The notes beneath the pieces were generated by a model, which worked only from the letters and a program-made list of their open reading frames with translations, did no database searches and had not been told where the DNA came from. This document shows, piece after piece, positions 5,849-62,210 of a DNA stretch of 64,000 nucleotides (position 1 is the stretch's first letter; each line of letters starts with the position of its first letter). A program made the translations under genes and the position numbers. The stretch is from the sequence record NC_047815.1. One strand, given 5' to 3'.

Positions 5849-5890
5849 AACTGTAAAGATGCTGTAACGAATCAATAGGGCATCTGCTGT

Positions 5891-6925
5891 ATGAAGAATA
5901 AATCTAACCTGACAGGTGGCCAGATAGAAAGCGTCATGGACACCCTGCTCCACGATTGTCTGCGCGAGATCGTGGAGAGCACTGATGTGTTTGACGTTCA
6001 ACTGACCTACTTGTTGAGCATGATCACGCTGAATAAAAAGCGTAAGCCACACAATGCTTCGAATCGCGACCGTGCTATCAGCTTGCTTATCCGAGCACTG
6101 AGCAGTCCGCGTGAAGAAAAGATGCAGTACATAATGGAACTGAAAATGGAGCGAAACTTCATTTATATGTTCCTGCAAAATGTAATTAACCGCTACTATG
6201 GACAGTATGTTGAACTCTACAGAAAGTTCATCTGCACCAAAGATCCTATAGCGCGTAAAACTTATGGCAAACAGCTTGATGCGTTTGTTCGTACCGTTGG
6301 CGCCAAGAACAGATCCAGTTTCTTTGTTGCGCTGAACAATCTCAATGACCTTATGCCGCACTTCACTGAATACTTCCATTCAGTTGTTGATGACTTCTAT
6401 CGACTGTGTACGGCACAAGCCAAGTTTTATGTCGATACCAATAAAGGTAAGCAGTACGATACCAAAGACGTCAAGCAGAACTTTTTACGCAACGTCATTA
6501 TTGCTATCAACAAGTATGATTCATCGCGTGGTGCGATTGTGTCATACGTCAAGTGGTGGATCTTGAACGCACAGACCTGTAGCTCGTCAGAACACGAGTA
6601 TGGCATTTCGTATACAATACCGCAGACCCAGAGGAAAAAGCTGGCAAGCGGTCAAGATACCACCTCAGTGAATTTCTCTGTTAGTCTTGATGCACCTACA
6701 AGCGAATCAGATGAAGGGATGGACGCATCTTTGCATCACAAGGTCAGTGATAGCCATAACCTTGAAGACGCAGTAGACAGCGGAAGACGTGCTGAGAAAC
6801 TGGGGCTGTTAATAAAGCGTATCGATCCCATGGGAATCGCGCGCCTCACAATGGACATACCTGAGGTGTTCGAACAGGAAGAACGTGAGTTGATGCGTAA
6901 ATATATGCTCCAGCAGGGCCTGTAA
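5891..6925 (+). CDS. phage RNA polymerase sigma factor (sigma70 family)
   Basis: Region-2-like LRNVIIAINKYDSSRGAIVSYVKWWI, followed by region-3-like SVSLDAP. Confidence 0.8.
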   Translation: MKNKSNLTGGQIESVMDTLLHDCLREIVESTDVFDVQLTYLLSMITLNKKRKPHNASNRDRAISLLIRALSSPREEKMQYIMELKMERNFIYMFLQNVINRYYGQYVELYRKFICTKDPIARKTYGKQLDAFVRTVGAKNRSSFFVALNNLNDLMPHFTEYFHSVVDDFYRLCTAQAKFYVDTNKGKQYDTKDVKQNFLRNVIIAINKYDSSRGAIVSYVKWWILNAQTCSSSEHEYGISYTIPQTQRKKLASGQDTTSVNFSVSLDAPTSESDEGMDASLHHKVSDSHNLEDAVDSGRRAEKLGLLIKRIDPMGIARLTMDIPEVFEQEERELMRKYMLQQGL

Positions 6926-6935
6926 ATAACTTTGG

Positions 6936-6945
6936 AATCTGTAAA
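6936..6945 (+). promoter_or_regulatory. AATCTGTAAA box, putative phage-sigma promoter
   Basis: Intergenic, upstream of SSB gene; identical copies at 32755, 61477, 62144, 62201. Confidence 0.6.
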
Positions 6946-6985
6946 AAGAAGTATCACAGAAACCGCTCAATTTTGAGGATTTATA

Positions 6986-8248
6986 ATGGGACGTGGATTT
7001 GACGCCATTCCAGACAATAGCTCACGCGATAACTTGCGTGAAGGTGATATTTTTGAAATCTACCCACTAGCAAAGAAAGCAAACAACACATGGGTGTCGT
7101 TGCGTCTTCTGCCTGGCGATCTGCTGCCGATTAAAAAGCACTGGATTCGCATCATGGGTGGCAAAGACAAAGATAAAGCCATCAAGATTCCACGTATGTG
7201 TGTTAGCTTTGACCCAGACAATCAAGGTCAAGAACTGCGCGGCATGAAGTGTCCTTACTGTGGCATCGAACATGGTAATGATGAGTCCGGCGCACCAGCA
7301 CAGTACGATTTCAAATGGTATGCTCAAGCGATTGTTCGTGATCTGCAAGCAGCCAAGCCTAAGCGTGTTGCACAGCATACCAAGAAAGAAAAGCAGACAG
7401 GCAAGAAAGAAAAGACCAGTGAAAGCTGGACGCCAGTTGTTGCTATCGGTATGTCAAATGCAATGGCGGGCAAGATTCGTCAGATGGGTGAACGTAACTT
7501 TGCTCAGGTCAAAGACAAAAAGTCTGGTCAAAAGATCAAGAAAGCGTTTCCTATCACTGATGCAAAGTACGGTATCGATATTGATATTAAGTACAGCCCG
7601 AAAGCTGCGCCTGCTGATCGTTACTCGTTCGAGAAAGGTGAACGTACACCTCTGACCGAAGAAGAACGTGAATATCTGACCTGGGACTTTGATAACTGGG
7701 AAGAGATCTATAATCTGCTTGGTCGTCTCGATGAAAAAGGCGCGTTGGCTGACTTTAAAAAGATGGACGTTATCGGCGGTGAATCTACCGAGTCAGATGA
7801 TGACGACGATGACGACGATGATGACGACGATATGGCGCTTGGCCGTAAGAAGAAAGGCAAAGCTGATAAGTCGTCCAAGAAAAAGAAACGTTCGTTGGAC
7901 GATGACGACGAAGACGATGATGAAGACGAAGATGATCTGCCTAAGAGCAAGAAGAAAGGCAAGTCCTCCAAGACTTCTAAAACAACCAAGTCTAAGCGTT
8001 TGCTTGACGACGACGAAGACGACGATGAGGATGATGAGCCTAAGAAGAAAAAGTCGTCCAAACTCAAGTCCAAGTCTTCTGTGAAGAAGAAAAAGAAAAC
8101 CGTTCTTGACGACGATGAAGATGAAGACGACGCGCCGAAGAAGAAAAAGAAATCTTCCAGCAAGTCGGTCAAGTCTTCCTCAGTGAAGAAAAAGAAAAAG
8201 TCTTCTGATGACGATGAACCCGTCAAGAAGAAAAAGAAAAAGAAGTAA
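6986..8248 (+). CDS. gp32-like single-stranded DNA-binding protein with long D-block/K-block tail
   Basis: LRLLP...HW...C...CPYC Zn-site pattern as in T4 gp32; next to UvsX; last ~155 aa low complexity. Confidence 0.7.
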   Translation: MGRGFDAIPDNSSRDNLREGDIFEIYPLAKKANNTWVSLRLLPGDLLPIKKHWIRIMGGKDKDKAIKIPRMCVSFDPDNQGQELRGMKCPYCGIEHGNDESGAPAQYDFKWYAQAIVRDLQAAKPKRVAQHTKKEKQTGKKEKTSESWTPVVAIGMSNAMAGKIRQMGERNFAQVKDKKSGQKIKKAFPITDAKYGIDIDIKYSPKAAPADRYSFEKGERTPLTEEEREYLTWDFDNWEEIYNLLGRLDEKGALADFKKMDVIGGESTESDDDDDDDDDDDDMALGRKKKGKADKSSKKKKRSLDDDDEDDDEDEDDLPKSKKKGKSSKTSKTTKSKRLLDDDEDDDEDDEPKKKKSSKLKSKSSVKKKKKTVLDDDEDEDDAPKKKKKSSSKSVKSSSVKKKKKSSDDDEPVKKKKKKK

Positions 8249-8259
8249 GTTAATCAAAC

Positions 8260-8288
8260 GGGGTGGCTAGCGCCGCCCCTTTGTTTTT
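8260..8288 (+). terminator. intrinsic terminator
   Basis: GGGGTGGC-TAGC-GCCGCCCC then TTTGTTTTT. Confidence 0.8.
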
Positions 8289-8309
8289 CTCAACCGAGTA
8301 CAAGATCAC

Positions 8310-10820
8310 ATGGCTAAAGTAGCGAAAGAGAAAGAGAAAAAGACTAAGATTAAGAAGTCCAAGACAGCAACAGCAGTGGCAACTACACTTGACGATATGG
8401 AAACTGGTGTTGTCGGTTTCGATATTGGGGATTTGATGGATGATCAGCTTGACCTGATCGAAAAGAAAACTAAAGTAAGCTCAGGCACAGCAGAACGTAA
8501 CGCACCTCGTGTATCAACAGGCCAGCTTGCGCTTGACATGTTCCTGAGTGGTGGCATCGTATCTGGTGGCTGGTATACGTTTAGTGGCGGTGAGCAGTCA
8601 TGTAAATCGACTCTCACGATGGCAATCATGGCCAGCCTGATTAAACTTGAATACGGCGGTATCAGTGCTGTGTTTGACTATGAAGGTTCAACAGATGCTG
8701 ACTATGTTGCTGGTCAGTTGAAAACGTTTGGCGTTACTGTTGACCCACGTACCATCTTTGGTGTGCGTGATGATACGAGCGGTGATTGGTTGATCAAACC
8801 TCGTATTCGTTACTATGCGCCAGACAACGGCACTCGCTTCTTTGACTGGATGAGTTCGCTGCGTCGCCGTCTGCCTGACAAGATTGTTGAGAAAGACGGT
8901 ACAGCATACATGTTGTTTGAGAACAACAAAGAGAATGCTAAAAAGCTGGCAGGTAAGTACGACAAGAAGTGGTTCAGTCGTCACAATCAGTTTAAAGTGC
9001 GTGCACCTGATGGTCACATGCAAGCAATGGTAATCGTTGATAGTTATCCTGCGATGCTGCCTGATCAGCTTGATGATGATGAAGGTTCAAACGCGATGGC
9101 GATTCAAGCGCGTATGTTCTCTGATGGTATCAAGCGTTTCCGTGGCGGTATGCGTGGTAAGATGATCACCATCGTCGGCGTTAACCAGTTACGTCAGAAG
9201 CCTGCGACCATGTTTGGTTCGCCCGAATATGAGCCCTGTGGGGACGCTCTCAAGTTCTACTGCTTTGACGCTACCACACTGATTCGTACCAACTTCGGTG
9301 TATTGACAGCGCCTGCTATTCAGAGCATGATGGCAGACGGTACAGAAGTGCTGGTGGAAACGCTGGGTGGCTTCGAACCTATCATGAAAGCATGGCGAGT
9401 TGAAGAACAACGCACTCCACTTGAATTGACCACAGCAGGCACAAGCTATATCGGCAGTGATCAACACCGCCAGCTAGTGTTCTATCGTGACGTTACTGAT
9501 CACAACGAGCCCGCGCTGCGAACTGAGTTCGCCACACTGAGCGATATTCAGTCTGCGAGCGGTGAAGTGTATGCGGTGATGCGTCTGTCCACTGTAGACG
9601 AACTGATGGAGTACAGCCACAAAGAGCGTAACGCCAGCCTGCGTTATGTCAATCAGTTCCTGCGTAGCGATGCCGTCAACACAATGATCAATGTCAGTGA
9701 AGGCTATCAGGTAGTTGCCGCTGTGTTGCGTGTTGGTGAGAATCACGTTGCGACTGTTATCTCAAGCCTGCTTGACCTTGGCATTATCAGCTACGAAGCC
9801 GCTAATCATACCGTGATCATTCCTGGTCTGAGTGTAGGCACAATGCGTACAGCTATTCTTGATTCAGTCACAACTGTTGAGAACAGCCTGATTCAACGTA
9901 GCGTTATGTTGCACCTCGCAATCGCAGACGCATTCCCTGAGCTGGCAAACTTTGTTGGTAAGTACAATCTTGCTGCTAACCTGCATGAAGCCGCGCACTT
10001 CGGTTCACACTATCAATCAGATGATTATGCATATCTGGCGGACAGCGAATCGATGGAGAAAGCACTCAAGCGTTTGGTCGCTCGTGACTTCCCTGAGTTT
10101 GCTGATCAGTATGATGAGATCTCACGTCAGGCGGCATACATTGATGACCTGTTAAGTCTCGATGAAAACTTGTACCCTGTCGCTTGCTCAGTGCGTGCTG
10201 TATCAGAGCAACAGCCCGTTGAATTGTGGGATGTTACTGTACCCGCCACCAGCGCTGTTGTTACTAACGGCTTTGTCAGTCATAACTCAGACGTGCGCAT
10301 TCGTCTTGCTTCGCGTGCTGTACCTCAAGGCTGGCCGACGCTTAAAGATGAACGTGCTATTGTTGGAGAGAAGTCTGTTACCGTTGAAGGTGGTATTGAC
10401 CGCTATCGTTTCATCGCTGCTAAGACCATCAAGAACAAGATGGGCGGCATCCCGAATCAGCAGACGTGGTTACGTTTGTGGGAAGCAGATGGCAATGGCG
10501 AAGCGCGTGGCTTTGACCCTGTGTTTGATACGTGGCACTATCTGAAAACGCTTGGTCTAATCAACGGTATGCGCAAGAAGTTCAAGATCAAAGCGCCTTG
10601 TCCTATCGCCAGCGATAAAGCGATGGACTGGGATCAGTTCCGTACTCTGATCAACGGAAGCAAAGCACAGATTACAGAAGTCTGTAAAGAACTTGGTGTG
10701 AAGCCTGGCAGTCTTCGCGCTTGGTGCTTCAAATTCATCGCCAGTGAAAAAGGTCAGGCTATGCTGAAAGACAGCATCAGCCGCAGTACCAAACAGAACG
10801 ACGACGAAGACGAAGATTAA
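8310..10820 (+). CDS. uvsX: RecA/UvsX recombinase interrupted by an intein
   Basis: Walker A-like GGEQSCKST, DYEG, VIVDS, ARMFS, NQLRQK, PEY..GDALKFY|SDVRIRL. Confidence 0.9.
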   Translation: MAKVAKEKEKKTKIKKSKTATAVATTLDDMETGVVGFDIGDLMDDQLDLIEKKTKVSSGTAERNAPRVSTGQLALDMFLSGGIVSGGWYTFSGGEQSCKSTLTMAIMASLIKLEYGGISAVFDYEGSTDADYVAGQLKTFGVTVDPRTIFGVRDDTSGDWLIKPRIRYYAPDNGTRFFDWMSSLRRRLPDKIVEKDGTAYMLFENNKENAKKLAGKYDKKWFSRHNQFKVRAPDGHMQAMVIVDSYPAMLPDQLDDDEGSNAMAIQARMFSDGIKRFRGGMRGKMITIVGVNQLRQKPATMFGSPEYEPCGDALKFYCFDATTLIRTNFGVLTAPAIQSMMADGTEVLVETLGGFEPIMKAWRVEEQRTPLELTTAGTSYIGSDQHRQLVFYRDVTDHNEPALRTEFATLSDIQSASGEVYAVMRLSTVDELMEYSHKERNASLRYVNQFLRSDAVNTMINVSEGYQVVAAVLRVGENHVATVISSLLDLGIISYEAANHTVIIPGLSVGTMRTAILDSVTTVENSLIQRSVMLHLAIADAFPELANFVGKYNLAANLHEAAHFGSHYQSDDYAYLADSESMEKALKRLVARDFPEFADQYDEISRQAAYIDDLLSLDENLYPVACSVRAVSEQQPVELWDVTVPATSAVVTNGFVSHNSDVRIRLASRAVPQGWPTLKDERAIVGEKSVTVEGGIDRYRFIAAKTIKNKMGGIPNQQTWLRLWEADGNGEARGFDPVFDTWHYLKTLGLINGMRKKFKIKAPCPIASDKAMDWDQFRTLINGSKAQITEVCKELGVKPGSLRAWCFKFIASEKGQAMLKDSISRSTKQNDDEDED
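9261..10286 (+). mobile_element. intein (342 aa, residues 318-659), probably with degenerate endonuclease region
   Basis: Begins CFDATT after ALKFY, ends TNGFVSHN before Ser; block-F-like LWDVTVP. Confidence 0.9.
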
Positions 10821-10885
10821 TAATCAGCCTGGACAAGGACGTCCACCCAACCTATCTCGATAGCCCACAGCGGCAGGAGAAAACT

Positions 10886-11617
10886 ATGCACGCAATCCAA
10901 ATCGAAAGCCCAGAAGTATTTGAAGGTATTATGCATGGCTTTATGCATAAAGGCATTACACAAGAAGCGCATACGCATTCGTCGCCTGAGGTATTGTACA
11001 TTAGTACCTCAGACAGAGCAGCCGATTTTGAAGTCAAAGGCATTCTGCGTAAAAATTCTGTACCTCACACTTTCATTGCGTGTGGTTACACTTCCATAAT
11101 GAGCCGAATTCGAGGTCGCACTCGCAGCAATATCACTGTGATGCTTTCTCCAGAAGTGCTGCACATAGACCCTATCTTGTTTTGCGGTAAAATGTCTGAA
11201 CTAATCGAATTTGGATCGTGTACCACGCTGATTGCCTTCGGTCCAAACAATGAAGTTATGCTTGAAGCTATCCGCAATCGCATGTACTCGAACTATAAAA
11301 GTCGCAATCCAACATTCGTTGAAGGAAGCGTACAGCTCACGAGTAACCTCAACTTCGAGGAGTTCCGCATGTGTGTTAGTCGTGTAGAAGCCTCCTTGAC
11401 GATAGGTGATTCTAATACTCCACTGTCTCAACTTAGCCGTCAGTATTTCTTTGGCGAAGAATTCTTGGCACTGGACCAACACGAGTTTCATGCCGACCTG
11501 CTGAAAATCGCGCAAAGCATTATGCCTAGCGACAGTATGGTGTTTCATCCTAAGGTACTAGAGCGGTTGTTCCGTGAAGTTCTTTGTAGCTTGAAGCTAA
11601 CGAACGTGATCCTGTAA
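10886..11617 (+). CDS. hypothetical protein
   Basis: AGGAG SD; no motif. Confidence 0.75.
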   Translation: MHAIQIESPEVFEGIMHGFMHKGITQEAHTHSSPEVLYISTSDRAADFEVKGILRKNSVPHTFIACGYTSIMSRIRGRTRSNITVMLSPEVLHIDPILFCGKMSELIEFGSCTTLIAFGPNNEVMLEAIRNRMYSNYKSRNPTFVEGSVQLTSNLNFEEFRMCVSRVEASLTIGDSNTPLSQLSRQYFFGEEFLALDQHEFHADLLKIAQSIMPSDSMVFHPKVLERLFREVLCSLKLTNVIL

Positions 11618-11631
11618 CACTATAAACAATC

Positions 11632-11655
11632 AGAGCGGCTTCGGTCGCTCTTTTC
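11632..11655 (+). terminator. intrinsic terminator
   Basis: AGAGCGGC-TTCG-GTCGCTCT then TTT. Confidence 0.75.
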
Positions 11656-11672
11656 ATATCTGAGGAACACGT

Positions 11673-12698
11673 ATGTCTGATAAGCCTTGGCACTTAGAAA
11701 TTCACGATTCAACCATCAGCAACAACTTTTCTATCGGCATGAGTCGCAAGCATATGACCGCTGCGTTTGAAAAGTACATCGAAAAGAATAGTGGTCAAAT
11801 TCCATTTTACGCTTTCTCGTTTGAGGAGTTCTGTCGCTGGGCTGGCGATAGACATGTGCCTTGGAAAGATAAACCTGTACGCGCTAGTGTTATGCATAGC
11901 GTGAATCTTATCTACGGACAATTTCTCTGGTCCTTTACCAAAGGTTGTTTCTCACCTGAGAAAGGGCTGCTTGAGTATTTAATAAACAGTGAACTTCCTA
12001 AGACGTTTCCTGTCTCTATGTTGCGTCGTCTGCCTCACTGGTCACAATGGATAAACACAAATCTATGTGTTGATTACACCTCCTCTGGTACAATGTATTC
12101 CATCGAGAGTACAGGATTTTGGGCAACCTACTGCATGATTGAGGGACGCACGAATCTTTCTCTTTTCGGTCTAGGTCTGTTCAAGAATGGAGAGCAAGAC
12201 AGAGAGATTATGAATGTTCAGGCCATGTTTGAGATTGAAGAAGATCGACCAATCGAAGACACTCTGGAAACATTCATGTTTCTTATGGGAAGCGAAGGTA
12301 GATACGGTGTTGAGGAGACGCACCCTGATTACGAAAATATTCGTGATGCTATCATTGCTTGGGTAAAGCAAGCGGCCAACATCATTCTGTTTGTATCGAG
12401 TCAGGTAGATGACCTATACAAAGGCGGTGTCAAGCAAGTACAACCTCGACGTAAAGGTAAAAGCTATAAACTTATGCCTGTCGCTAAAGAGCGTAATTGG
12501 TCTGTCGGCACAGAGTTCCTGAACCCTATACGCGAGTATGAAAAAACTATAGGCACCATGACGTCTATTCAAAAGCGTGCTGCCCATATTCGTCGCGGTC
12601 ACTACCATAGTTTCTGGCGTGGACCTCGCGATGGACAACGTGAATTATTCAGCAAATGGTTGCCACCAACAGTTGTCAGAGGAACTTTAGAAACATAA
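11673..12698 (+). CDS. hypothetical protein with C-terminal HxRRGH motif
   Basis: GAGG SD; AHIRRGHYHSFWRGP...KWLPP. Confidence 0.75.
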   Translation: MSDKPWHLEIHDSTISNNFSIGMSRKHMTAAFEKYIEKNSGQIPFYAFSFEEFCRWAGDRHVPWKDKPVRASVMHSVNLIYGQFLWSFTKGCFSPEKGLLEYLINSELPKTFPVSMLRRLPHWSQWINTNLCVDYTSSGTMYSIESTGFWATYCMIEGRTNLSLFGLGLFKNGEQDREIMNVQAMFEIEEDRPIEDTLETFMFLMGSEGRYGVEETHPDYENIRDAIIAWVKQAANIILFVSSQVDDLYKGGVKQVQPRRKGKSYKLMPVAKERNWSVGTEFLNPIREYEKTIGTMTSIQKRAAHIRRGHYHSFWRGPRDGQRELFSKWLPPTVVRGTLET

Positions 12699-12743
12699 GA
12701 ATATTCTTAGTCCTTTTCTCTAATTTAAACACGTTGGCAAGAA

Positions 12744-13049: not shown

Positions 13050-13055
13050 TACATA

Positions 13056-13091: not shown

Positions 13092-13137
13092 TGTATGCTA
13101 ATTTCGATGACAAGACACAACCACAACGGAGAATGTC

Positions 13138-13804: not shown

Positions 13805-15262
13805 ATGAGCATCATTTCATTATCGGCCACAGCCGCACAGAAGGACGCTGCCGTCTATTTGTTTGGCTCTAAAGGGCACAGCATTATCGCTGCTATTGAA
13901 GCACTGGCTAAGTCCAAAGAACTCAACACTCCTCATCTGAATGGTCTGATGGCCATGCTGAAAGAAGCGGAAGATGATGAGATCATCAAGTTCAAAAACA
14001 GCGCTGGTGGCAAAAAGTCTATTGAGGCTGCAAAGCAGTTAGTTACGGCCAAGACTCTGGTAACCAGCATCAAGGCGCTGCGTGCTGTTAAGGTTCCGTC
14101 TAAGTGGATTCCTAATCACGATGACGTCAAGAACCAAGCTGTATCTGAAACCGTTGTGCATCGCGCTACTGGTCGCGGTACTCGTCCGAAGAAAGCTGAA
14201 CAGATGGTAAATCCTCAGGCACCTGAAGCAGAGGAGATTGATGACTACGCACAGTACGCAGACATTAAAAATCTAGCTGCCAAAGTTCAGGACGCTCTCG
14301 AAGAAGATCATGAGATGGACGTCAAGATTACTGGTCATGCTGCGAAAGGTAAAGGTTCTTCTGCATATATGGAGGTTAAACAAGGGCGTCGTGTATTAGG
14401 TTCAATCTTTGTTCCTTACGCCGGTCGTCAAGTCCGCAGTGGTGAGTGGTTTAACGCGTCCGAAATCACGATGCAAGTCGAAAGTTTCGAACACAACGAC
14501 ATGGTTTATGATAAGATGAAGGGCTTAGGTCTTATCGACGTTGCTGGGTCAATCGCTGACAAGTTTGCAGAGCTTGCAGAGAAAGCTAACAAAGGTCCAG
14601 ATACAACTTCTCGTCGTAAAGATGGTGCTCGTATGGAAGCAGTAACCAGCGATTACCCTAACAGTTTTAGAATTGACCCAGAGCGTAACCCTGGATTAAT
14701 TGCTAAGATTGATCCTTACTTTAATAAAATTTCAGGCAAGAAAAACAGATCTGTTCAAGCCCGAGGTATTGTCAACTTCTCGTTTGCTACCAAACGTGAT
14801 ATGAACAGCGTGATTAAACAGTTTGACCTGACTTTGAACGCTATCGGTGATGCATTCTATCACCCACCAAGAGTTGTTGGCAGCGTAGTGCCTAGTAAAA
14901 CTGCGGCCAAACGCACTACGACAAATTCAGACCTGTTTACGATCGGTAACGGTGCTACTACCGTTAAATCTGTCAAGCGTGTCAATAACGGTGGCATTGA
15001 AATTCAATTCGCTGGTCCGAAGCCTTCATCAGTTCTCGTCAGTACAGAAGATGAATGGTTAGTAGTTGAGAACAAGCGTGGCGGTCAGAGTGGTTGGGAC
15101 GTTGCTGCGGAATTCTTGAACAAAGCAATCGTTGCCGCAGGTTCTTCTGTTGTTGAGCAGTCAGACCAAGCGGGCTATGAAGGATTTAAGCTGCCTAATG
15201 ATGCGGAAGTTGATAAGGTTATTGCTTATCTCGCCAAACTTAAAATCAACGCAAAAAAGTAA
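13805..15262 (+). CDS. 485-aa protein with N-terminal SIISLS tag, candidate virion protein
   Basis: GAGG SD; starts MSIISLSAT; ends GCA AAA AAG TAA. Confidence 0.75.
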   Translation: MSIISLSATAAQKDAAVYLFGSKGHSIIAAIEALAKSKELNTPHLNGLMAMLKEAEDDEIIKFKNSAGGKKSIEAAKQLVTAKTLVTSIKALRAVKVPSKWIPNHDDVKNQAVSETVVHRATGRGTRPKKAEQMVNPQAPEAEEIDDYAQYADIKNLAAKVQDALEEDHEMDVKITGHAAKGKGSSAYMEVKQGRRVLGSIFVPYAGRQVRSGEWFNASEITMQVESFEHNDMVYDKMKGLGLIDVAGSIADKFAELAEKANKGPDTTSRRKDGARMEAVTSDYPNSFRIDPERNPGLIAKIDPYFNKISGKKNRSVQARGIVNFSFATKRDMNSVIKQFDLTLNAIGDAFYHPPRVVGSVVPSKTAAKRTTTNSDLFTIGNGATTVKSVKRVNNGGIEIQFAGPKPSSVLVSTEDEWLVVENKRGGQSGWDVAAEFLNKAIVAAGSSVVEQSDQAGYEGFKLPNDAEVDKVIAYLAKLKINAKK

Positions 15263-15669: not shown

Positions 15670-15926
15670 CACCGTTCTGTAACAAAATTTACAATCCAAT
15701 CATAAATAACCTATACAGGCCCGTCAGCCGAGTTGTGTCGTGTTTAACTCACAAGTTACCCTGCCTGTATCGCCACTATTGGTATAACTCTAGTACAGTT
15801 CGGTACGTCCGAAATCGATCTGAATCTTTCCTCTTGTTTTATCGTTAATTAAGCAGAGTAGGCAAGCTACCTACACACACTTATCTAGGCAAATTTGCTA
15901 TCGGTTAACACCAAGAGGAATATTCC

Positions 15927-32725: not shown

Positions 32726-32754
32726 TCTAACTCAAACCCCTACGTATCAACCCT

Positions 32755-32764
32755 AATCTGTAAA
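32755..32764 (+). promoter_or_regulatory. AATCTGTAAA box
   Basis: Intergenic perfect copy upstream of GNAT-uvsE. Confidence 0.6.
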
Positions 32765-32821
32765 TACTGTTTGGGAGATCTGATAAAGATTTCCCGTCGT
32801 GCATTCTAAGGAGAAAAAGTA

Positions 32822-33247
32822 ATGCCTCGACCTATGTCTAGTCCGTATCGCACTATGGAAATAACTCTTCCGAACCTTGCCGCTTTCTTCGAAGATCTCA
32901 AGCAAGACTCGGACGCTGTTAAGATTGTAGAACAAATGCAATGGGCAGTGCATGATCCAGACGTTCGCATCTATGCTGCTTACTACGACAACAGACCAGT
33001 TGCTGTTATTGGTATTCTGCAAGATGTGTATCTGCGTTTCATTGTGGTACGTGAACCACATCGACGCAAGGGCGTAGGTCGTTCGCTTGTTGAGAAGTAC
33101 GCTCAACATGTGAAAGGTATAACTGTAGATAAAAGTGATACAGGTTGTCAAATGTTCTTCCGCAAAGTTGGTTGGGTCGATTACGAAGCAATGCAGCTTG
33201 ACCAGCTTGACCAGCTTGCAATGATTCGCGGTGATTTTTTAGCATAA
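32822..33247 (+). CDS. GNAT-family acetyltransferase
   Basis: FIVVREPHRRKGVGRSLV motif A; FFRKVGW motif B. Confidence 0.8.
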   Translation: MPRPMSSPYRTMEITLPNLAAFFEDLKQDSDAVKIVEQMQWAVHDPDVRIYAAYYDNRPVAVIGILQDVYLRFIVVREPHRRKGVGRSLVEKYAQHVKGITVDKSDTGCQMFFRKVGWVDYEAMQLDQLDQLAMIRGDFLA

Positions 33248-35474: not shown

Positions 35475-35541
35475 ACTTGTTTCTACTATTAATTGCTGCC
35501 GAGCTTGCGGGCTAGGCGTCTCCTCCACAAAGGAAAAACCA

Positions 35542-40558: not shown

Positions 40559-40995
40559 TGGGCGTAGTTAATGGTATTGACGCACACAACTTCCCAACGC
40601 AAAGCCGTGACGTTGGCGTTAAGAGCTTGTTAGAAACACCTCATGGTAAATATCCTGCTGTAGCTGTTCGTCGTGACCGGGAAGAACCGAACGACGTTAT
40701 CTGGCGCATCGACGGTGAACTGCTGCCTATCGATATGCAGTTCGGCTCTGCGCAGCACGCCTACATTTCTCAGCGCAGTCTGGACAGTTATCCGAATGAA
40801 CCGTTCATTCGTGCTCGCGGTAAATTTTGCATGGAAGGCAAAACAACTGCCATCTGCTTCCGTTACAACACTAAAGAATCATGCGAAGGCATTTGCGTAT
40901 ATGATCGTGGACCATTCACTGTGTTCCTGATTACCACAGGTCCACACGAAGGTCGCTACGTCAGCGCACACGAATGTCAGTACAGTCACTGCTGA
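40558..40995 (+). CDS. hypothetical protein
   Basis: TAATG overlap; GGAG SD. Confidence 0.75.
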   Translation: MGVVNGIDAHNFPTQSRDVGVKSLLETPHGKYPAVAVRRDREEPNDVIWRIDGELLPIDMQFGSAQHAYISQRSLDSYPNEPFIRARGKFCMEGKTTAICFRYNTKESCEGICVYDRGPFTVFLITTGPHEGRYVSAHECQYSHC

Positions 40996-41019
40996 TTCTG
41001 TAAAGACAAGAGGTCAACA

Positions 41020-41199
41020 ATGAAATACCAAATTCTGGTGATCACCAGCCGAAACAATAACAATGTCGGAGGTGTTGGCGTTTCTCAAGCAGTTGTCGAA
41101 TTTGACGCACGCGGCGATGCTGATGTAGCTTTCGATAAAATCGAGCTTGCAGCTAAAAGTGATAGTCACCATGAAATCAAACCAATCAAATTGTATTAA
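41020..41199 (+). CDS. 59-aa small protein missed by ORF track (MKYQILVITSRNNNNVGG...)
   Basis: GAGGT SD; fills gap before dUTPase; ATTCTGTAAA box at 40995. Confidence 0.7.
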   Translation: MKYQILVITSRNNNNVGGVGVSQAVVEFDARGDADVAFDKIELAAKSDSHHEIKPIKLY

Positions 41200-41699: not shown

Positions 41700-41784
41700 T
41701 CTGATTATGGGCCTTGCGTGGGCCCATGTTCTATTCAACACTAATTTCACCAAGTGGGGTGAATATGATTATTGAGATACCGTT

Positions 41785-55813: not shown

Positions 55814-56277
55814 AACAACCGAAGAAGATTTCAATCAGTCGTTCGTCTATGCGCCCTGAACAACGTGACCACAAGCTGGCAAACGTTGTGAACTTTCTTT
55901 TGGGTACGATTGGTACTCAAGCTACTATGGTCAGTCAGACCATGTTGCTAAACACAGCTAACTATCACTGGCTTACCTCAGTATCAGACACTCGAAGCGA
56001 TACAAAAGAAAATCGCCGTGTGTTGCACAAAACTGTAAAAGATCTAAACGCGTATTGTAGAAAGAATAAAATACCGTTGGGATTACTAATTATGCCGCAT
56101 ACCTCAGCGTCTGATTCGTCTGGGGATGATGTGTGTGCCATACCGTGGACGCATGTTAAAGCAAGTGCAGCACAGCGCAGCGCAATCAATTCACTATTCG
56201 CACTAAGCATGAATGATTATGGCGAACAGTTTGTGCGAGACGCAAAAACTGATTCAGAGGGCAGCGATGTTTTATAA
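55810..56277 (+). CDS. hypothetical protein, possible distant paralog of 55412
   Basis: LNAYCRKNKIPLGLLIM. Confidence 0.65.
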   Translation: MKQPKKISISRSSMRPEQRDHKLANVVNFLLGTIGTQATMVSQTMLLNTANYHWLTSVSDTRSDTKENRRVLHKTVKDLNAYCRKNKIPLGLLIMPHTSASDSSGDDVCAIPWTHVKASAAQRSAINSLFALSMNDYGEQFVRDAKTDSEGSDVL

Positions 56278-57520
56278 ATCAATCTTCACAACGGAAGAGC
56301 AGAACCTTTTTCTGCAACTAATGCAGTGGCGCTTAATCCCGAATGAAGTTCCGAAGTTTATGGAAAGTTCGCAGTGTGTGATGAAAGTCCGACACAGCAT
56401 CATTCGTTACAATCAAGCGAGTCAGGTGGTGGCAAACATCCTGCCTCGTATAGCACCTCGTACTGTACTGCGTATTGTCAGTGAAGTGCGTGCAGGCAAT
56501 CTTGGTCTGCCGCTCACTCAACTTGCTGTGTTGTTTGAGCTTGGCATGGGCGTTCCTAAGCAGCGCGACATTGCACGCTATATTCGTGCGTATGACCCAC
56601 AAGAAGATCATGAAGGTCGTACACTGAAACATATACGCAAGATGATTGTGCAGTATCAGCGCAATCTCAAGCGCAGCCTGTACAACATTCAGTATCTGCC
56701 ACCAGCACCATACGTTGCTCAGATGTTGAAGCTCCAGCAGTTTGTTCATCTGCGAGAAGGCGGCTACAAGCACAAGGTCAAAGTACCAGACGGTCTGCCT
56801 GTCGTGCTGATCTATGCAAACGACAAAGTTGCCGAAGCACAGTTTACACTAACTGATGCCTTTATGATTAGCCCTCTTGGTTATCCCGTGCCGTTTGCTA
56901 ACATCGCAATGCGCAAGGAGTTTGGTGCTGTCAAGACTTTTCAGAGTCGTGCGCTGCAAGGCAAGGGAATGTACAGCATGGTGTTTGGTGTTGTCTATTG
57001 GTCTGGTCAAAAGACAACAGCGATGATGCGCCAACTGCGTTGTCTCGACACAGAAGAAAGCTATGCTGTGTTGTTCGACAACTATCCTGAATTGTGCAGT
57101 GAGGAATTGCTTGAGTCGTATCAATACAAGCGCACTGATACCGAACAGCACATCGCAGCACTGGAAACTGTAAAAGAATTTCGTGACCAACGTAGTCTGA
57201 CACCCAAGCAGCAACGTCGCCTTGATCGTGCAAATGAATACTTTGCCGTTCGCAGTGAAGCTCTTGGTGATCTTGAGAAATTGGAGAAACGTGAGGCGCG
57301 TAATCTCGAAAAGACAGGGCCTGTAGCCACAGCACGTTTTTGTGCAATTGACGCAGGTACCATCGAAGACCGAGATACCTTTACCAGTGTGAAGAACCCT
57401 ATTGAGAAAGTTGAAACTGTGTTAGCGCGTTGGGGATTTGAAACCCTAGGCAAAGCCGCTGATCGCAGTTCTGTCCTGACTTATACGAGCGCACCGAAGG
57501 GTCGCTGTTGGTCACTATAA
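56267..57520 (+). CDS. basic hypothetical protein
   Basis: GAGG SD before ATG 56267. Confidence 0.75.
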   Translation: MFYKSIFTTEEQNLFLQLMQWRLIPNEVPKFMESSQCVMKVRHSIIRYNQASQVVANILPRIAPRTVLRIVSEVRAGNLGLPLTQLAVLFELGMGVPKQRDIARYIRAYDPQEDHEGRTLKHIRKMIVQYQRNLKRSLYNIQYLPPAPYVAQMLKLQQFVHLREGGYKHKVKVPDGLPVVLIYANDKVAEAQFTLTDAFMISPLGYPVPFANIAMRKEFGAVKTFQSRALQGKGMYSMVFGVVYWSGQKTTAMMRQLRCLDTEESYAVLFDNYPELCSEELLESYQYKRTDTEQHIAALETVKEFRDQRSLTPKQQRRLDRANEYFAVRSEALGDLEKLEKREARNLEKTGPVATARFCAIDAGTIEDRDTFTSVKNPIEKVETVLARWGFETLGKAADRSSVLTYTSAPKGRCWSL

Positions 57521-57544
57521 CGTTATATCTGAGGAGATACAAAG

Positions 57545-60526
57545 ATGACCGATCAAAACACTAACGGTTCAGCGAAGTCTAGTGCTGAGGAACAACAGCG
57601 CGTGATTGACCAGAACCGTCACAACACAGCGGCAGCCAGTCAAGATAAGACTGCACTGTTTGTTGTGCTTGCCCCAACCAATGCTGACAACGAAGTTAGC
57701 AACGTTGATTGCAAAGGCGATTTCTTTGCGCGGCAGCTTGAAACAAAAGCAATTGACCGTCTGCCTGACATGTTGAGTCATGTTAGTCAGGGTCTGAAAG
57801 CACAGCACTCCGCATACGATTTACTGCTGCCTCAAAACGGCGTGCCTACTTCTATCGATGCGCGTGTGCAATTGAATGAGCAGTACGACGCCAAGATCGT
57901 TCGCTATACTGTAAACGTTTCAAAGTCGGCATTGATGCAACGTCTCAGCATGGCAATCTTCGATGTTGCTGGTGACCGTAACATCTATGACGTAGCAGCA
58001 CAGTACGGTATTCACGCTATTGTCCTCTCAGATGACAAACAAGCTGTAAATGTACTGCGTGAGTTAGAGTCTCAGCTTGTAGCGTCTAAAGCTGACTTTA
58101 ACTCGGTAATCGATATTGATGATGACGCGCTGAATACCGTGCTGATCAATGTCAACACATTGCCTGCTAATCCGAGCGTGCTTATCGAAGGCGTGCGTCG
58201 TACTTTCGCAATTCAAAATGCTAACGGCCAGTTGCTGGCACCGTCTAAAATTGGAGAACAAACTGTGGTAGATAAAAACAATGGTCCTGTAGATCTCGAC
58301 GAAGATAACTTTGAATCCGTTGATCAGGACAACGAGCAGTCCGACGAAGAAGAAGTGGCAACGGGCCGTGCGCTGCTGGGCTATCAAGCTGATAGCCTGA
58401 CTCAAGAGCAAAAGATTGAAGCTCTGACCGCTATCGATTATGATTGTTCCGAGATGGACGAAGAAGCAATCGACGAAGCGTTTTTGGTTGAGCAAGAGAA
58501 GTTCCTCGACAGCGAAGACGAAGACTCAGAAGAAGAATCTGATGAAGAATCAGAAGAAGCCGAAGACTTCGACGCTGCTGGTGAAATCACTGCTATCCTT
58601 GAGCAGTACGGTGATGACCGTGACCAGATCAAACGTCTGGTGCGTGCTGCTGAACTGAAAGTGCTGGTAGCCGATACTGCTGAAACGCTGGCTGCTAAAC
58701 TGATTGCTCATGTTGAAGACATGAACGAAGAACAGTTTGCCGAATTCCTGACTGATCTGATTGCTGCCGTTGAAGGCAAGCCTGTTGACGTTGCGCCGCT
58801 TAACGAGTGGTTCGATGATACCGACTCTACCGACGAAGAAGAAGACGAAGAGTCCGAAGATGAAGATGAGCAGGACGAAGATGAAGACGAAGATGAGCAG
58901 CAATCTGCCATCGACGCTATTACCGACCCGCTTGATTACTTCGACTATGCTGGTGGTGACCTGACTCCTGAACAACGTATCTCTGCGGTTGAAGCGATGG
59001 GTCACTCCACAGAAGGCCTGAACATCATCAAAGTGATGAAGCTGTTTAACCGTCTGAAAGAAGAAGTATCGCCAGAAACTCTGGACGAAGAAGACGAGCA
59101 GGACGCTCTGCAAGTTCAAGCAGACCTCGACGAAGAAGAGGAGATTGCAGACGAGTCAGAAGACGTAGTTAAGGCGCGTGCGTATCTCGCTGCTGCCGCT
59201 GCTGATGACCTGTCTATCATCGCCGAACTGGTTGGTGCAGATGCAACTGACCTCGACGAAGAACAGACTATCGAAGCCGTGTTGTTTGAAGGTGATATTG
59301 ATAATCTGATCGCTGCTGCTGATACGTACGGTGTTGAAGCTGACTCCGATATCTCCTACTGGGAATTGCTGGTGGCGTTCCTGGAAAGCTACTTCTCAGA
59401 AGATGATTCAGAAGAAGCGGACTTCGGACAAGATGAACCTCAGTCTGAAAACGAAAGCATCCTTGCTCAGGCTGGTGTTGAGAACAACTCTAATCCACTG
59501 GGTATCGAAGCTGTGTCTGGCGCCGACAACAGCGGTAGCTTGAAGTTCCTGCGTAATGCACACAACAGCCCAGCAGGTACGCTGATGAGCGTTGATATGC
59601 CGCAGTCGCTGATCATCAACTTCACGCTGACTGACCGTGCATCGTTTGAAGAATTCAACGAAGAACTGCAGGACGTTGACGGCCTGAACTATCGCTTCCC
59701 GTTTGTTCGTCCGAAGAAAGCGAACAAAGCACAAGGCGCGATGTACCAGCCTGCTGCGTCACTGATTGAAATCATGGAGCAGACTGCAACAAGCCGCTTC
59801 ATGGTCGACACTAATCAGTTTGATGTTGGTCAATTCAGCGAAGCACTGAATGCGTCACTGGCCACCAGCGTTGAGAACAACCTGTATGACGGTCTGCTGG
59901 AACCAGGCGCTAACCCGCACGAAGAAGGTCTCAAGCTCGGTGACTTTGTTGATGACGAAGAACTGACCGATGATGAAATCGCTCCTGAGTATTGGGACGA
60001 ATTCCAGGGTGCTGACTTGCCTATGCACGGTATCATCAACGGTTTCGTGGGCGTTCGTCCTGTGCAAATCGAAGAACTGCACAGCGTGTTGTGCCTCGGT
60101 GTGCTGAACGTTGCAGTGCCTGGTATCTGGGAACTGGACCGTAACAAAGTTGGTGAGCTGCTTGATGGCGCAATCAATGCTGTCAAATCTCTGCTGGCAC
60201 CGAACAACAACATCAAAGTACACGTGGGCTTCACTCTGAGTTCTGCCTCTCTGATTGTTGATGATACGCTGATGCATGTTGTTAATCATCTGCGTGATCA
60301 GGAAATGCTGTACAGCTACTCCTCTGCCGACTGTGCGTTGTTCGCAGACAACGAAGACGTGCTGGAAGCCGCTGCAAGTCTCGACAACAGCGAACGTCTG
60401 CCGCTTGAACTGCTGTCTACTGGCTTCGCTGGCAAGACGTTTGAAAACGGCGGTGACCTGACTATTCTGGTTCCTTGCTTTGAAATCGACGCTGACGAAG
60501 ACGAAGACGAAGCAGACGAAGAATAA
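57545..60526 (+). CDS. 993-aa highly acidic modular protein
   Basis: GAGGAG SD; short helical modules separated by D/E tracts. Confidence 0.85.
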   Translation: MTDQNTNGSAKSSAEEQQRVIDQNRHNTAAASQDKTALFVVLAPTNADNEVSNVDCKGDFFARQLETKAIDRLPDMLSHVSQGLKAQHSAYDLLLPQNGVPTSIDARVQLNEQYDAKIVRYTVNVSKSALMQRLSMAIFDVAGDRNIYDVAAQYGIHAIVLSDDKQAVNVLRELESQLVASKADFNSVIDIDDDALNTVLINVNTLPANPSVLIEGVRRTFAIQNANGQLLAPSKIGEQTVVDKNNGPVDLDEDNFESVDQDNEQSDEEEVATGRALLGYQADSLTQEQKIEALTAIDYDCSEMDEEAIDEAFLVEQEKFLDSEDEDSEEESDEESEEAEDFDAAGEITAILEQYGDDRDQIKRLVRAAELKVLVADTAETLAAKLIAHVEDMNEEQFAEFLTDLIAAVEGKPVDVAPLNEWFDDTDSTDEEEDEESEDEDEQDEDEDEDEQQSAIDAITDPLDYFDYAGGDLTPEQRISAVEAMGHSTEGLNIIKVMKLFNRLKEEVSPETLDEEDEQDALQVQADLDEEEEIADESEDVVKARAYLAAAAADDLSIIAELVGADATDLDEEQTIEAVLFEGDIDNLIAAADTYGVEADSDISYWELLVAFLESYFSEDDSEEADFGQDEPQSENESILAQAGVENNSNPLGIEAVSGADNSGSLKFLRNAHNSPAGTLMSVDMPQSLIINFTLTDRASFEEFNEELQDVDGLNYRFPFVRPKKANKAQGAMYQPAASLIEIMEQTATSRFMVDTNQFDVGQFSEALNASLATSVENNLYDGLLEPGANPHEEGLKLGDFVDDEELTDDEIAPEYWDEFQGADLPMHGIINGFVGVRPVQIEELHSVLCLGVLNVAVPGIWELDRNKVGELLDGAINAVKSLLAPNNNIKVHVGFTLSSASLIVDDTLMHVVNHLRDQEMLYSYSSADCALFADNEDVLEAAASLDNSERLPLELLSTGFAGKTFENGGDLTILVPCFEIDADEDEDEADEE

Positions 60527-60540
60527 AATCTGTTAATGTA

Positions 60541-60567
60541 GGGCGTAGCGCAACTGCGCCCTCATTT
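60541..60567 (+). terminator. stem-loop / probable terminator
   Basis: GGGCGTAG/CTGCGCCC stem, weak U-tract. Confidence 0.5.
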
Positions 60568-60579
60568 CTGGAGATTGTA

Positions 60580-61464
60580 ATGTCAGAACACAACAGCACT
60601 GAACAGCAAGACAGCGGTATGATGTTGCGTGACCACATCGTATCCCTTGAGCAGCGTGTTCGTAATCTGAGTGGTCAAGTGCAGGACTTATCTGCCGAGC
60701 TTGCTCAAACCTCTACGAACCACACCAACAAAAGCATTGAGTGCCGTCGCCTGACTCGTGTGTTAGCTGAACGTGATGCGCAACTGCAAGCAGCAACAGA
60801 CCTTGCCTCAGAACGTAAAACAGCACTTGAGCAAATGATTTCAGTCGGTGAAGCTCAACGGAAACTACGTGAGACGGAATCTCGCACTGCTGAAAAGCGT
60901 TACAATGAACTGCGTAACCAGCTTGCTAAGCCTGCTGGAAATCAGAAATTTGTTATGAACATGATAATTAACGCTGCACTGAACGAACTCCGTTGTGGTG
61001 TTGAGCGTGCGTTGTTCATGTACAGCACAGCAAATCCACGCAAGACCAATCGGCATCGTGCTGCCGAACAAGCACTGCGTGAGCAATTAACTTTGGAAGA
61101 CGTTCCAAGTTCTTTGCAGGATATTGTAAAAGTATACTGCGTTACAACAAACACGGCGTTTGATATTGATTCAGTCCTCAGCGAACTTAGCGCCCATGTG
61201 ATGTTGTGCCGAGAGACGATTGAAGACAGCGATACGGCGTCCGGCATGTTCAATCAAATGTCAAGCACGATAGTCGCACAGCGTGCCTTGCTTGAGCAAG
61301 ACGTAGCATCCGAACCTGACGACATTCTGTTTACGTTTATGTATGACGTAATCAACGATGACGAAAAGCCTTACGGCGATTCGCTGATTGATGCAGTAAC
61401 AAAATTGTGTGTACGTTACGCACAGCAATTAAGTTTCGAACTTCCAGTTTTATCTGACGAATAA
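60580..61464 (+). CDS. coiled-coil protein
   Basis: GGAG SD; heptad-rich N-terminal ~120 aa. Confidence 0.75.
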   Translation: MSEHNSTEQQDSGMMLRDHIVSLEQRVRNLSGQVQDLSAELAQTSTNHTNKSIECRRLTRVLAERDAQLQAATDLASERKTALEQMISVGEAQRKLRETESRTAEKRYNELRNQLAKPAGNQKFVMNMIINAALNELRCGVERALFMYSTANPRKTNRHRAAEQALREQLTLEDVPSSLQDIVKVYCVTTNTAFDIDSVLSELSAHVMLCRETIEDSDTASGMFNQMSSTIVAQRALLEQDVASEPDDILFTFMYDVINDDEKPYGDSLIDAVTKLCVRYAQQLSFELPVLSDE

Positions 61465-61476
61465 AAAATCAGAATA

Positions 61477-61486
61477 AATCTGTAAA
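61477..61486 (+). promoter_or_regulatory. AATCTGTAAA box
   Basis: Intergenic perfect copy. Confidence 0.6.
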
Positions 61487-61544
61487 TTGTAATTGAACCA
61501 CACACGGTAATTGTACCGCGACTATTAATCATCTGGAGTTTTAA

Positions 61545-62114
61545 ATGGCAAAGTCCACTAGCACTGCACTGGTAGCACCGACTCGTATCAACCGCATTTC
61601 TAAAAAGAGCGGTTCTATTTCACAGTCTGCTGCTAAAGCGTCTCAGATGCCGCACGATGTAACTATCACCGCTACTCAGGTTTACGATGTTCAGGGTTTC
61701 ATCACTGAACTGACTGCTGACAGCGTAACTATTCGTCACAAACGTGGCTTCGGTTCAAGCGCCCAGGTTCTGTCAACGTTCCCACGCAGTCAAGTTATCG
61801 AGCTGGTGGGTGATACCGGTACTTTCGGTAGCCTGAGTGTTCTGGGCAACGTGCCTGTTCGTACTCTGAAAGGTCAGTTGCTGTCGTTTAAGGGTACTCA
61901 AGTCATTGCTACTGACTTCGATACCAAAGAAGTTACCGTGCTGAACACAACCGTGCCTGGCGTGTCTATCACTTACGCTGTGAACGAAACTGCCGCTGCT
62001 AAAAAGTATGGCATTGCTGCTCCGACCAAAGGCAAGAAAGCTGACGCGAAAGCAGCGCCTGCTAAAGCTGCTAAAGGCGGTAAGCCAGTCAAGGCTGGTA
62101 AATCAAAAAAGTAA
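61545..62114 (+). CDS. basic protein with beta-rich core and K/A tail
   Basis: GGAG SD; ends TCA AAA AAG TAA. Confidence 0.8.
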   Translation: MAKSTSTALVAPTRINRISKKSGSISQSAAKASQMPHDVTITATQVYDVQGFITELTADSVTIRHKRGFGSSAQVLSTFPRSQVIELVGDTGTFGSLSVLGNVPVRTLKGQLLSFKGTQVIATDFDTKEVTVLNTTVPGVSITYAVNETAAAKKYGIAAPTKGKKADAKAAPAKAAKGGKPVKAGKSKK

Positions 62115-62141
62115 GTTCTGACGAAGATTTTTAATCGTCAG
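62105..62141 (+). other. candidate -1 programmed frameshift signal
   Basis: A AAA AAG heptamer, 6-nt spacer, CTGACGA/TCGTCAG hairpin. Confidence 0.5.
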
Positions 62142-62143
62142 TA

Positions 62144-62210
62144 AATCTGTAAAGTGTATTCGTCAAGGGCGTTGTTGTTTTAACAGCGTCCTCAAAAACA
62201 AATCTGTAAA
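62144..62210 (+). promoter_or_regulatory. two AATCTGTAAA boxes
   Basis: Perfect copies at 62144 and 62201, upstream of 62256. Confidence 0.6.

Follow-up and report, generated by a model that had tools for sequence, protein, structure and literature searches.

The DNA analysed here (the window, 64,000 nucleotides) is identical (100%) to positions 186001-250000 of the record of vB_EamM_Yoloswag, an Erwinia jumbo phage (KY448244.1 / NC_047815.1, 259,700 bp), and its subject is a short word, AATCTGTAAA, that recurs upstream of the phage's genes. The word itself is real, and the evidence of position and conservation strongly supports its being part of the main phage-specific promoter signal, aAAtCTGTAAATA, which would stand before DNA-replication genes in Yoloswag and its relatives. 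AATCTGTAAA makes up the 5' two-thirds of a 13-nt single box, aAAtCTGTAAAtA, named here the M box. Which factor reads this box is a separate question, for which a phage-encoded sigma factor, gp237, the product of a gene within the window, is the leading but tentative candidate. Positions are those of the window unless marked as record positions.

Most jumbo phages have no RNA polymerase of their own, and the sigma homologues of such polymerase-less phages have been described as 'likely' to direct the host polymerase to phage-specific promoters (PMC13282480, PMC7824862). For one such lineage, the present analysis offers a concrete promoter map, comprising box sequences, predicted transcription starts, three gene classes and conservation over five host genera, and it brings the sigma question within reach of a direct test with two proteins and a few templates. 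Furthermore, about 80 genomes of related phages, among them several candidates for the biocontrol of fire blight and soft rot, could be better annotated with this map, and the boxes described below offer compact, host-independent promoter parts.

The M box: sequence, distribution and geometry

The motif, its orientation, its position, its conservation and its geometry can all be read directly from the genomes. The original prediction for this DNA had listed five perfect copies of AATCTGTAAA, and these are indeed found at 6936, 32755, 61477, 62144 and 62201 (its positions are box starts plus one), all on the + strand; the expected number is 0.20, and none of 100 shuffles reached five. With one mismatch allowed, the window holds 16 matches (5.2 expected), 14 of them on the + strand, and the near copies proposed at 5848, 40995 and 60527 are all present. 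Among the CTGTAAC variants that had been added to these, the one at 11611 survives as a degenerate box better placed at 11616-11628, and those at 15677 and 63070 are weak and unsupported. The annotated genes of the window all lie on the + strand, and the whole genome falls into three strand blocks (+ at 1-37.4 kb, - at 37.4-180.0 kb and + at 180.1-259.7 kb). Across that genome the proposed enrichment holds, with 15 sense and no antisense copies of AATCTGTAAA, 12 of the 15 in non-coding DNA, which is the 12.7% of the genome that our own gene calls leave over; the shorter core CTGTAAATA occurs 28 times in sense and once in antisense orientation.

The conserved unit extends further 3' than the word first noticed, and the copies at 6936, 61477, 62144 and 62201 deviate from the consensus at the 3' TA. 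Expectation maximisation (EM) from six unrelated seeds converged in every run on aAAtCTGTAAAtA, with about 41 sites in 150 intergenic regions, and the same box ranked first in an unbiased multi-seed de novo search of Yoloswag upstream regions. The commonest intergenic 8-mer of the genome, CTGTAAAT (28 intergenic, 37 sense and 3 antisense copies), tells the same story, and the 13-nt weight matrix at a threshold of at least 12 bits returns 49 sense sites (35 of them intergenic), six antisense sites and three sites in a reversed-genome control.

No -35 element was detected, since between -20 and -5, counted from the box C, the base composition shows no peak in either 37 Yoloswag sites or 203 pooled ones, and no fixed downstream hexamer is conserved after the M box. 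The distance from the box C to the next start codon has a median of 52 nt, with most sites at 19-109 nt, and a strong hairpin followed by a T-run lies within 70 nt upstream of 6 of 33 boxes, as against 19 of 300 random intergenic control positions. Among the 203 intergenic sites pooled from seven genomes, position +14 from the box C is T in 50% and a pyrimidine in 68%, and position +15 is a purine in 84% (about 55% elsewhere, a difference of some eight standard errors); in Lu11 this pyrimidine-purine step takes the form CTGTAAATA-N4-GTA. Since such a step 6-7 nt past the box looks like a start site, CTG would occupy -15 to -13 and TAAATA -12 to -7, and we infer from this register that the M box, spanning -15 to -7, is an upstream-extended element of the -10 type that has no -35 partner. 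On these sequence grounds the reading of the M box as a promoter is strongly supported.

Two simpler promoter models were rejected. A MotA-type arrangement, with an activator site and a separate -10 element, is rejected because no TAnnnT-like element lies at any fixed distance; the downstream GTA of Lu11 fits a start site instead. Reading of the box by unaided host sigma70 is likewise rejected on sequence, as position -7 lacks a T and the TG lies in the wrong place.

Conservation in related phages and prior annotation

De novo motif searches of upstream regions rank the M box first in Yoloswag and equally in seven of its relatives, namely pEa_SNUABM_5 (hereafter SNU5), JA29, Lu11, PaBG, PhiXhv-12, GR7B and Aura, the eight phages together covering Erwinia, Dickeya, Pseudomonas, Xanthomonas and Vibrio hosts. 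A box of at least 9 bits within 170 nt upstream of the orthologue is retained in SNU5 at 28 of 37 Yoloswag sites and in the Dickeya phage JA29 at 14 of 22 orthologous genes; the chance rate for a box in a 170-nt stretch, estimated from the reversed-genome control, is about 2%. The top upstream motif of Lu11 is CTGTAAAT, with 19 of 48 copies in upstream regions. The Xanthomonas phage PhiXhv-12 has atcCTGTAAATa, the Vibrio phage GR7B [CT]TGTAAATa, and PaBG and the Pseudomonas putida phage Aura the variants aa[CG]TGTAAAc and ccgGTAAATg, respectively. Aura also has a further upstream motif, ATAcTGGCACcatg, at about 11 sites, which resembles a sigma54-type -24 element. In Lu11, PhiXhv-12 and GR7B, the genomes in which functions were mapped, the M box stands before replication genes and avoids the structural blocks, preceding genes for DNA polymerase, clamp loader, primase, topoisomerase II, ThyA or SSB.

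The motif itself is not new, having been annotated in 2012 in Lu11, whose genome was reported by Adriaenssens et al. in that year (J Virol 86:6369). The Lu11 record JQ768459.1 carries 16-nt 'putative middle/late promoter' features that begin exactly at CTGTAAATA or CTGTAAATG and read aaaaCTGTAAATA; exact copies in Lu11 number 33, as against 2 in the reversed control. Yoloswag shares what characterises this promoter type in the PaBG/Lu11/Y3 'Lupandier' phages, that is, a core CTGTAAAT(A/G) with an A-rich stretch 5' of it, on the coding strand and intergenic, and it shares the gene contexts too: the annotated Lu11 boxes before the SSB-like gene beside the sigma gene, and the tandem pair before Lu11_0161, are syntenic with the Yoloswag boxes before SSB and with the tandem pair before the acidic gp322-like gene. 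The differences are that the Lu11 features are computational and belong to another phage, with a Pseudomonas host and a sigma identity of 34%; that the Lu11 annotation lumps middle and late promoters, whereas in Yoloswag the M box is confined to replication genes and the structural genes have a TAATTT box, as they do in Lu11; and that the records of Yoloswag itself, unlike that of Lu11, contain no such promoter features. A search of the available papers found no description of promoters in Yoloswag, Y3, AD1 or PaBG, nor in other Erwinia or Dickeya members of the group, and a text search of the literature for the motif returned unrelated primers only. What is new here is the breadth over five host genera, the restriction to the replication class, the separate candidate late box, the predicted starts and the putative composite promoters that combine the two boxes.

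Comparison with known promoter systems

T4 late promoters carry the box TATAAATA, which gp55 recognises together with gp33 and the gp45 clamp. The M box resembles them in being a single box in the -10 region without a -35 element, its core TGTAAATA being identical to TATAAATA at 7 of 8 positions, and presumably also in relying on host core polymerase and a phage sigma that lacks region 4. However, exact TATAAATA occurs in Yoloswag only in antisense orientation (0 sense, 3 antisense), the M box reaches 5 nt further upstream (aAAtC), and gp237 shows no profile similarity to T4 gp55 (hhalign probability 0.3%), resembling sigma70 domain 2 instead. Moreover, the M box precedes replication rather than structural genes in Yoloswag, Lu11, PhiXhv-12 and GR7B, and hence is not a late signal in the T4 sense. 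The proposal of a promoter-like single box without a -35 element, recalling the T4 late box, is supported by strand specificity, intergenic position, conservation at orthologous positions and the fixed pyrimidine-purine step.

With the bacterial extended -10 promoter (TGnTATAAT), the M box has in common a -10 hexamer with a TG extension, independence of a -35 element and, in the sigma factor, a 3.0-like helix. Nevertheless, the TG of the M box lies one base closer, directly abutting TAAATA, which places it outside that class, and TAAATA lacks the near-invariant T at -7, the next position showing no preference for T. The sigma70-type early promoters of Yoloswag itself, with TGnTAcAAT and a TAGCAa -35 element, look unlike the M box. 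Pavlova et al. are said to have described, in 2012, single-element promoters of phiEco32 that are read by the sigma factor gp36. The likeness lies in one conserved 9-nt box near the start and in a phage sigma-family protein acting on host core polymerase; the lineage, the type of sigma and the box sequence are reportedly all unlike those of Yoloswag.

Gene classes and further promoter families

According to the RefSeq annotation and the site list, M boxes stand before the DNA polymerase genes gp161, gp167 and gp169 and the clamp loader gene gp202. They also precede the genes for NAD ligase (gp147), recombination endonuclease (gp182), ThyA (gp38), Dam (gp25), a ParB-like protein and the GNAT acetyltransferase gp279. 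As the original prediction had it, the box further precedes the genes for sigma gp237, SSB gp238 and the acidic and basic proteins gp320-gp322, with M boxes at 5847, 6935, 60526, 61476, 62143 and 62200. The structural block at 37-128 kb of the record is almost free of copies.

Once the M box is masked, EM picks out three more motifs, namely terminators, an early family of sigma70 type and a second single box, called here the L box. The early family consists of strong promoters whose conserved upstream part is unusually long; it reads cAAAtc..tGGTCAAAA-N6-TAGCAa-N15/16-TGnTAcAAT and occurs only at 204-256 kb of the record. The AAATCTG in its 5' part equals the 5' half of the M box, and early promoters of GR7B likewise carry GGTAAATAAA upstream of the -35 element; this M-box-like half could be a shut-off site or a coincidence.

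The L box, (a)cgCTAATTT-N6-GT, is again strand-specific, TAATTT having 55 sense and 5 antisense copies genome-wide, and 75% of pooled sites have a purine 7 nt past the box. The genes that follow it, at a distance of 25-80 nt, are structural and lysis genes, and its conservation extends to SNU5, Lu11, PaBG and GR7B. In Yoloswag it precedes both tail sheath genes, the gp140-gp139-capsid operon, gp104, gp148, gp155, and the endolysin and exopolysaccharide (EPS) depolymerase genes, and the capsid gene has a TTAATTT variant of its own immediately upstream. In Lu11 a TAATTT box stands directly before the capsid and sheath genes, and in the structural block of GR7B TAATT[TAC] is common. These contexts make the L box a candidate late promoter, so that three promoter classes, early, middle (M) and late (L), can apparently be told apart in Yoloswag.

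The two boxes also occur together. CTGTAAA-N3-TAATT(G/T) composites, each made up of an M box and an L-like box at a constant distance downstream of it, are found at 61480-61495 and at record 13835-13850, and CTGTAAA-N3-TAATTG composites are conserved before the orthologues of gp321 and gp322 in phages Alexandra and JA29. These arrangements suggest expression in both the middle and the late phase. In addition, the 265-nt intergenic region at record 255241-255505, upstream of gp330-gp334 and hence of gp333, combines an M box with an early-type promoter and two L boxes, one after another; this is the sole place where an early-type promoter lies beside M and L boxes.

The sigma factor gp237

The gp237 protein has no Pfam, NCBIfam or PDB sequence match of its own, and its assignment comes in part from phrog_17569 (Table 1). 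Its Lu11 and PaBG orthologues score above the Pfam Sigma70_r2 threshold (30.3 and 24.1 bits), and its segment AINKYDSSRGAIVSYVKWWILNAQT, conserved across the family alignments, is recognisable as a putative region 2.2-2.4. The best-conserved parts are region 2 (YVKWWILNAQT) and then a 3.0-like HEYGxAYTxPQ segment, and gp237 shows the region 2 typical of the sigma70 family, which in that family serves core binding, -10 recognition and, through a WW motif, melting. Its AlphaFold2 model is of moderate quality (predicted local distance difference test score, pLDDT, 62), with low confidence in the C-terminal part, and the top Foldseek matches of this model are almost all E. coli sigma70 chains (probability up to 1.0, E 0.01-0.1). 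Only about 55 residues follow the acidic linker, the Aura and GR7B proteins end right after DPxGxAR, and no Pfam match to Sigma70_r4 was obtained in gp237 or the orthologues examined. The -35-reading region 4.2 is thus probably absent, which fits single-box promoters. A search of the genome with phrog_234, aimed at a gp55-family sigma, gave no match but carries no information, as the control search was likewise empty. The sigma-SSB-RecA neighbourhood is common to all these phages, and the sigma family and the box co-occur in 8 of 8 phages over five host genera, at sigma identities down to 24%.

What reads the M box

In the mechanism that we propose, the M box would drive a middle class of genes for replication, recombination and nucleotide metabolism, together with those for sigma, SSB and the acidic and basic proteins, which are abundant. 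The start would fall 6-7 nt past the final A of the box, with no -35 element used, and a phage-encoded specificity factor would direct the host core RNA polymerase to it. The likeliest single candidate for that factor is the RpoD-like sigma encoded at 5891-6925, which lacks region 4 and would also stimulate its own gene. Both the initiation at the box and the identity of its reader are what we infer rather than observe, and dependence of the box on this sigma is plausible. That gp237 reads the M box we rate at a little short of an even chance, in view of the co-occurrence described above, of a box that is non-canonical for host sigma70 and of a sigma that has no apparent -35 reader.

Several points weigh against this assignment. 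In the Erwinia/Dickeya clade the sigma gene itself lies behind an M box, and in Lu11 and GR7B it lies within M-box-headed blocks. Only chance-level matches to a sigma70-type promoter were found upstream of it, and the early promoters, all downstream of the sigma gene on the same strand, cannot feed it. Boxes that depend on this sigma would consequently need a bootstrap, in the form of read-through, a weak host start or packaged protein; the best of the matches, TTCACA-17-TAAAAT at record 185454-185482 inside gp223, is at chance level. In phages such as T4 and SPO1, sigma genes are as a rule part of the gene class that comes before their target class, and by that logic the TAATTT box would be the target of gp237. 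The residues of region 2.4 differ between Yoloswag and Lu11 despite their shared box, and agree between Yoloswag and PaBG despite their different boxes. There is also a second candidate sigma, gp333, and a search of sequencing runs detected the phage only in four DNA metagenome runs, at small shares, and in no RNA run. Two approaches to assigning the sigma gave no discrimination: co-variation of region 2.4 with box variants followed no consistent pattern, and phyletic separation of M and L boxes failed as both seem to be group-wide.

The most serious of the rival explanations, possible but on the unlikely side, is a cascade in which another factor, either an early protein that retargets the sigma70 holoenzyme or gp333, reads the M box, and gp237, itself made from an M-box promoter, then reads cgCTAATTT-N6-G, in three steps from early through M to late. 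It would account for a sigma gene that has an M box but no sigma70-type promoter ahead of it, and the TAATTT box, which has the T at -12, the A at -11 and the T at -7 of a sigma70-family -10 element, besides its downstream purine, its strand bias and its place before structural and lysis genes, is as good a candidate target for gp237 as the M box, a further point against the assignment preferred above. The protein gp333 (record 258097-259236) has as its orthologue PaBG gp112, and this has been called a possible sigma (PMC7412058). The nearest ESM Atlas clusters of gp333 carry Sigma70_r2, and its operon is the one headed by the early-type promoter next to M and L boxes. Yet the M-box factor of such a cascade is only a candidate: the AlphaFold2 model of gp333 (pLDDT 48) falls short of the quality needed for a fold search, its profile comparison with the sigma family is not significant and a PDB profile search gave nothing significant. 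Moreover, its relatives (tblastn, E at most 1e-3) come only from Erwinia, Dickeya, Pseudomonas, Yersinia and NCTB records among the matches listed (40 of 63), none of these being from the M-box-bearing Xanthomonas and Vibrio phages or from Aura. The M box, having no T at -7, would also be a poor target for host sigma70.

That one sigma reads both boxes, with a co-factor or differences in affinity setting the timing, seems improbable. The boxes share C..TAA.T in the same register, a TAATTT-seeded EM run drifts to the mixed motif aaatCtgTAAaTa, the composites before the gp321 and gp322 orthologues keep a fixed spacing, and a T4 gp33-like co-factor has been reported in all group 2 jumbo phages (Iyer et al., PMC7824862); nevertheless, 5 of the 9 positions are not shared between the two boxes, and their gene sets are cleanly split by function. 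It is more improbable still that the word is an RNA-level signal in 5' leaders, such as a processing site or a translational repressor site, instead of a DNA promoter. Strand specificity and a place in the 5' regions of genes would suit such a signal, but the distance to the start codon varies in a way unlike an operator, the box often comes right after intrinsic terminators and is followed by a pyrimidine-purine step at a fixed distance, and both its -10-like composition and its identity with the T4 late box at all but one of eight positions speak for a promoter.

If gp237 is nevertheless taken as the reader of the M box, the results could be extended to an ancient three-tier programme of -10-only promoters, common to a whole supergroup of jumbo phages without an RNA polymerase that infect Erwinia, Dickeya, Pseudomonas, Xanthomonas and Vibrio. 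Host sigma70 would serve the early genes, a self-amplifying, RpoD-like sigma without region 4 would act on CTGTAAATA for replication, TAATTT would serve the virion genes, composites would act for proteins needed throughout infection, and M-box-like half-sites upstream of the early promoters would help to shut these off. We regard this extended scheme as rather unlikely in its entirety.

Sites in the window

Table 1. The sigma gene, M-box sites and other predicted promoter elements in the window; scores are from the 13-nt weight matrix unless the smoothed matrix is named.
Feature	Position	Strand	Sequence	Score (bits)	Predicted start	Remarks
Intragenic copy inside gp226	1258..1270	+	AATTCTGTAAAGA	15.5		kept in relatives
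M box before sigma gene	5847..5859	+	AAAACTGTAAAGA	17.5	~5865-5866	32 nt before sigma ATG
Phage sigma gene gp237	5891..6925	+				344 aa; phrog_17569 'RNA polymerase sigma factor', 8e-169
Core copy overlapping sigma stop codon	6920..6928	+	CTGTAAATA			no A-rich 5' part; not conserved in SNU5
M box before SSB gene	6935..6947	+	GAATCTGTAAAAA	16.3	~6953-6954	39 nt before SSB ATG 6986
Degenerate M box before gp241	11616..11628	+	AACACTATAAACA	12.6		ATG 11673
M box, best of the window	32754..32766	+	TAATCTGTAAATA	19.8	~32772-32773	
Weak box inside acetyltransferase gene	33119..33131	+	ATAACTGTAGATA	11.8 (smoothed matrix); 9.6 (standard matrix)		
Near copy before gp294	40994..41006	+	GATTCTGTAAAGA	13.7		not conserved in SNU5
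Variant box before gp320	60526..60538	+	AAATCTGTTAATG	12.8		ATG 60580; identical variant at SNU5 orthologue
Putative composite promoter before gp321	61476..61495	+	AAATCTGTAAATT (M box)	18.5		ATG 61545
First tandem M box before gp322	62143..62155	+		15.4		
Second tandem M box before gp322	62200..62212	+		16.3	~62218-62219	
Early family	18125, 19231, 27753, 34222, 38938, 49455, 50867, 52331, 52543		GGTCAAAA			
L boxes (candidate late promoters)	12721-12726, 13099-13104, 15846-15851, 41742-41747					15846 before EPS depolymerase gene

Canonical boxes stand at the same place before the sigma gene in SNU5, Alexandra and JA29, and the box before the SSB gene is retained in SNU5, Alexandra, JA29, HRDY3 and Lu11 and, with one mismatch, in PaBG; a box also precedes the annotated SSB gene of Aura and the gene that follows sigma in GR7B, which is SSB-like by tblastn. 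The best box of the window precedes the GNAT acetyltransferase gene gp279 (ATG 32822; Pfam GNAT match), and the box of the SNU5 orthologue is identical. Two weaker boxes have stronger counterparts in relatives, the SNU5 orthologue of the gp241 box being the canonical AACACTGTAAACA (15.3 bits), and the box at 33119, which lies upstream of a UvsE-like endonuclease gene (ATG 33255), corresponding to ATATCTGTAAATA (17.8 bits) before the JA29 orthologue. In the composite before gp321, the L-like TAATTG at 61490-61495 follows the M box after 3 nt. The second tandem box lies 43 nt before the ATG of gp322 at 62256, with a hairpin between the two boxes; the gp322 orthologue is preceded by two boxes in SNU5 and Alexandra and by four in JA29, and a pair also stands before Lu11_0161, which in part matches the gp322 gene (85% DNA identity).

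Three copies call for more caution. That at 6920 is probably fortuitous, as it has no A-rich 5' part and no counterpart in SNU5. The near copy before gp294 has its C at 40998, about 22 nt before the ATG at 41020, and its last base 13 nt before that ATG; as a promoter it is doubtful because it is too near the start codon for the predicted geometry and unconserved in SNU5. The intragenic copy at 1258 lies in a conserved lysine-rich coding stretch, so that coding constraint can explain its retention.

Several further elements lie close to these sites. A hairpin, gggagatctgataaagatttccc, occupies 32767-32810 in the predicted leader after the box at 32754 and is kept with compensating context in SNU5. 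A palindrome, CTCAATTTTGAG, at 6966-6977 abuts the Shine-Dalgarno sequence of the SSB gene and reads CTCAATATTGAG in SNU5, Alexandra and JA29; by analogy with T4 gene 32, it may be a translational operator. Finally, the word CTATTAAT[TCG] has seven copies in the genome, all in sense orientation and including those at 35486 and 61522 of the window; in five cases a start codon follows after 3-25 nt, and only the copies at record 35038 and 221486 are more distant from one.

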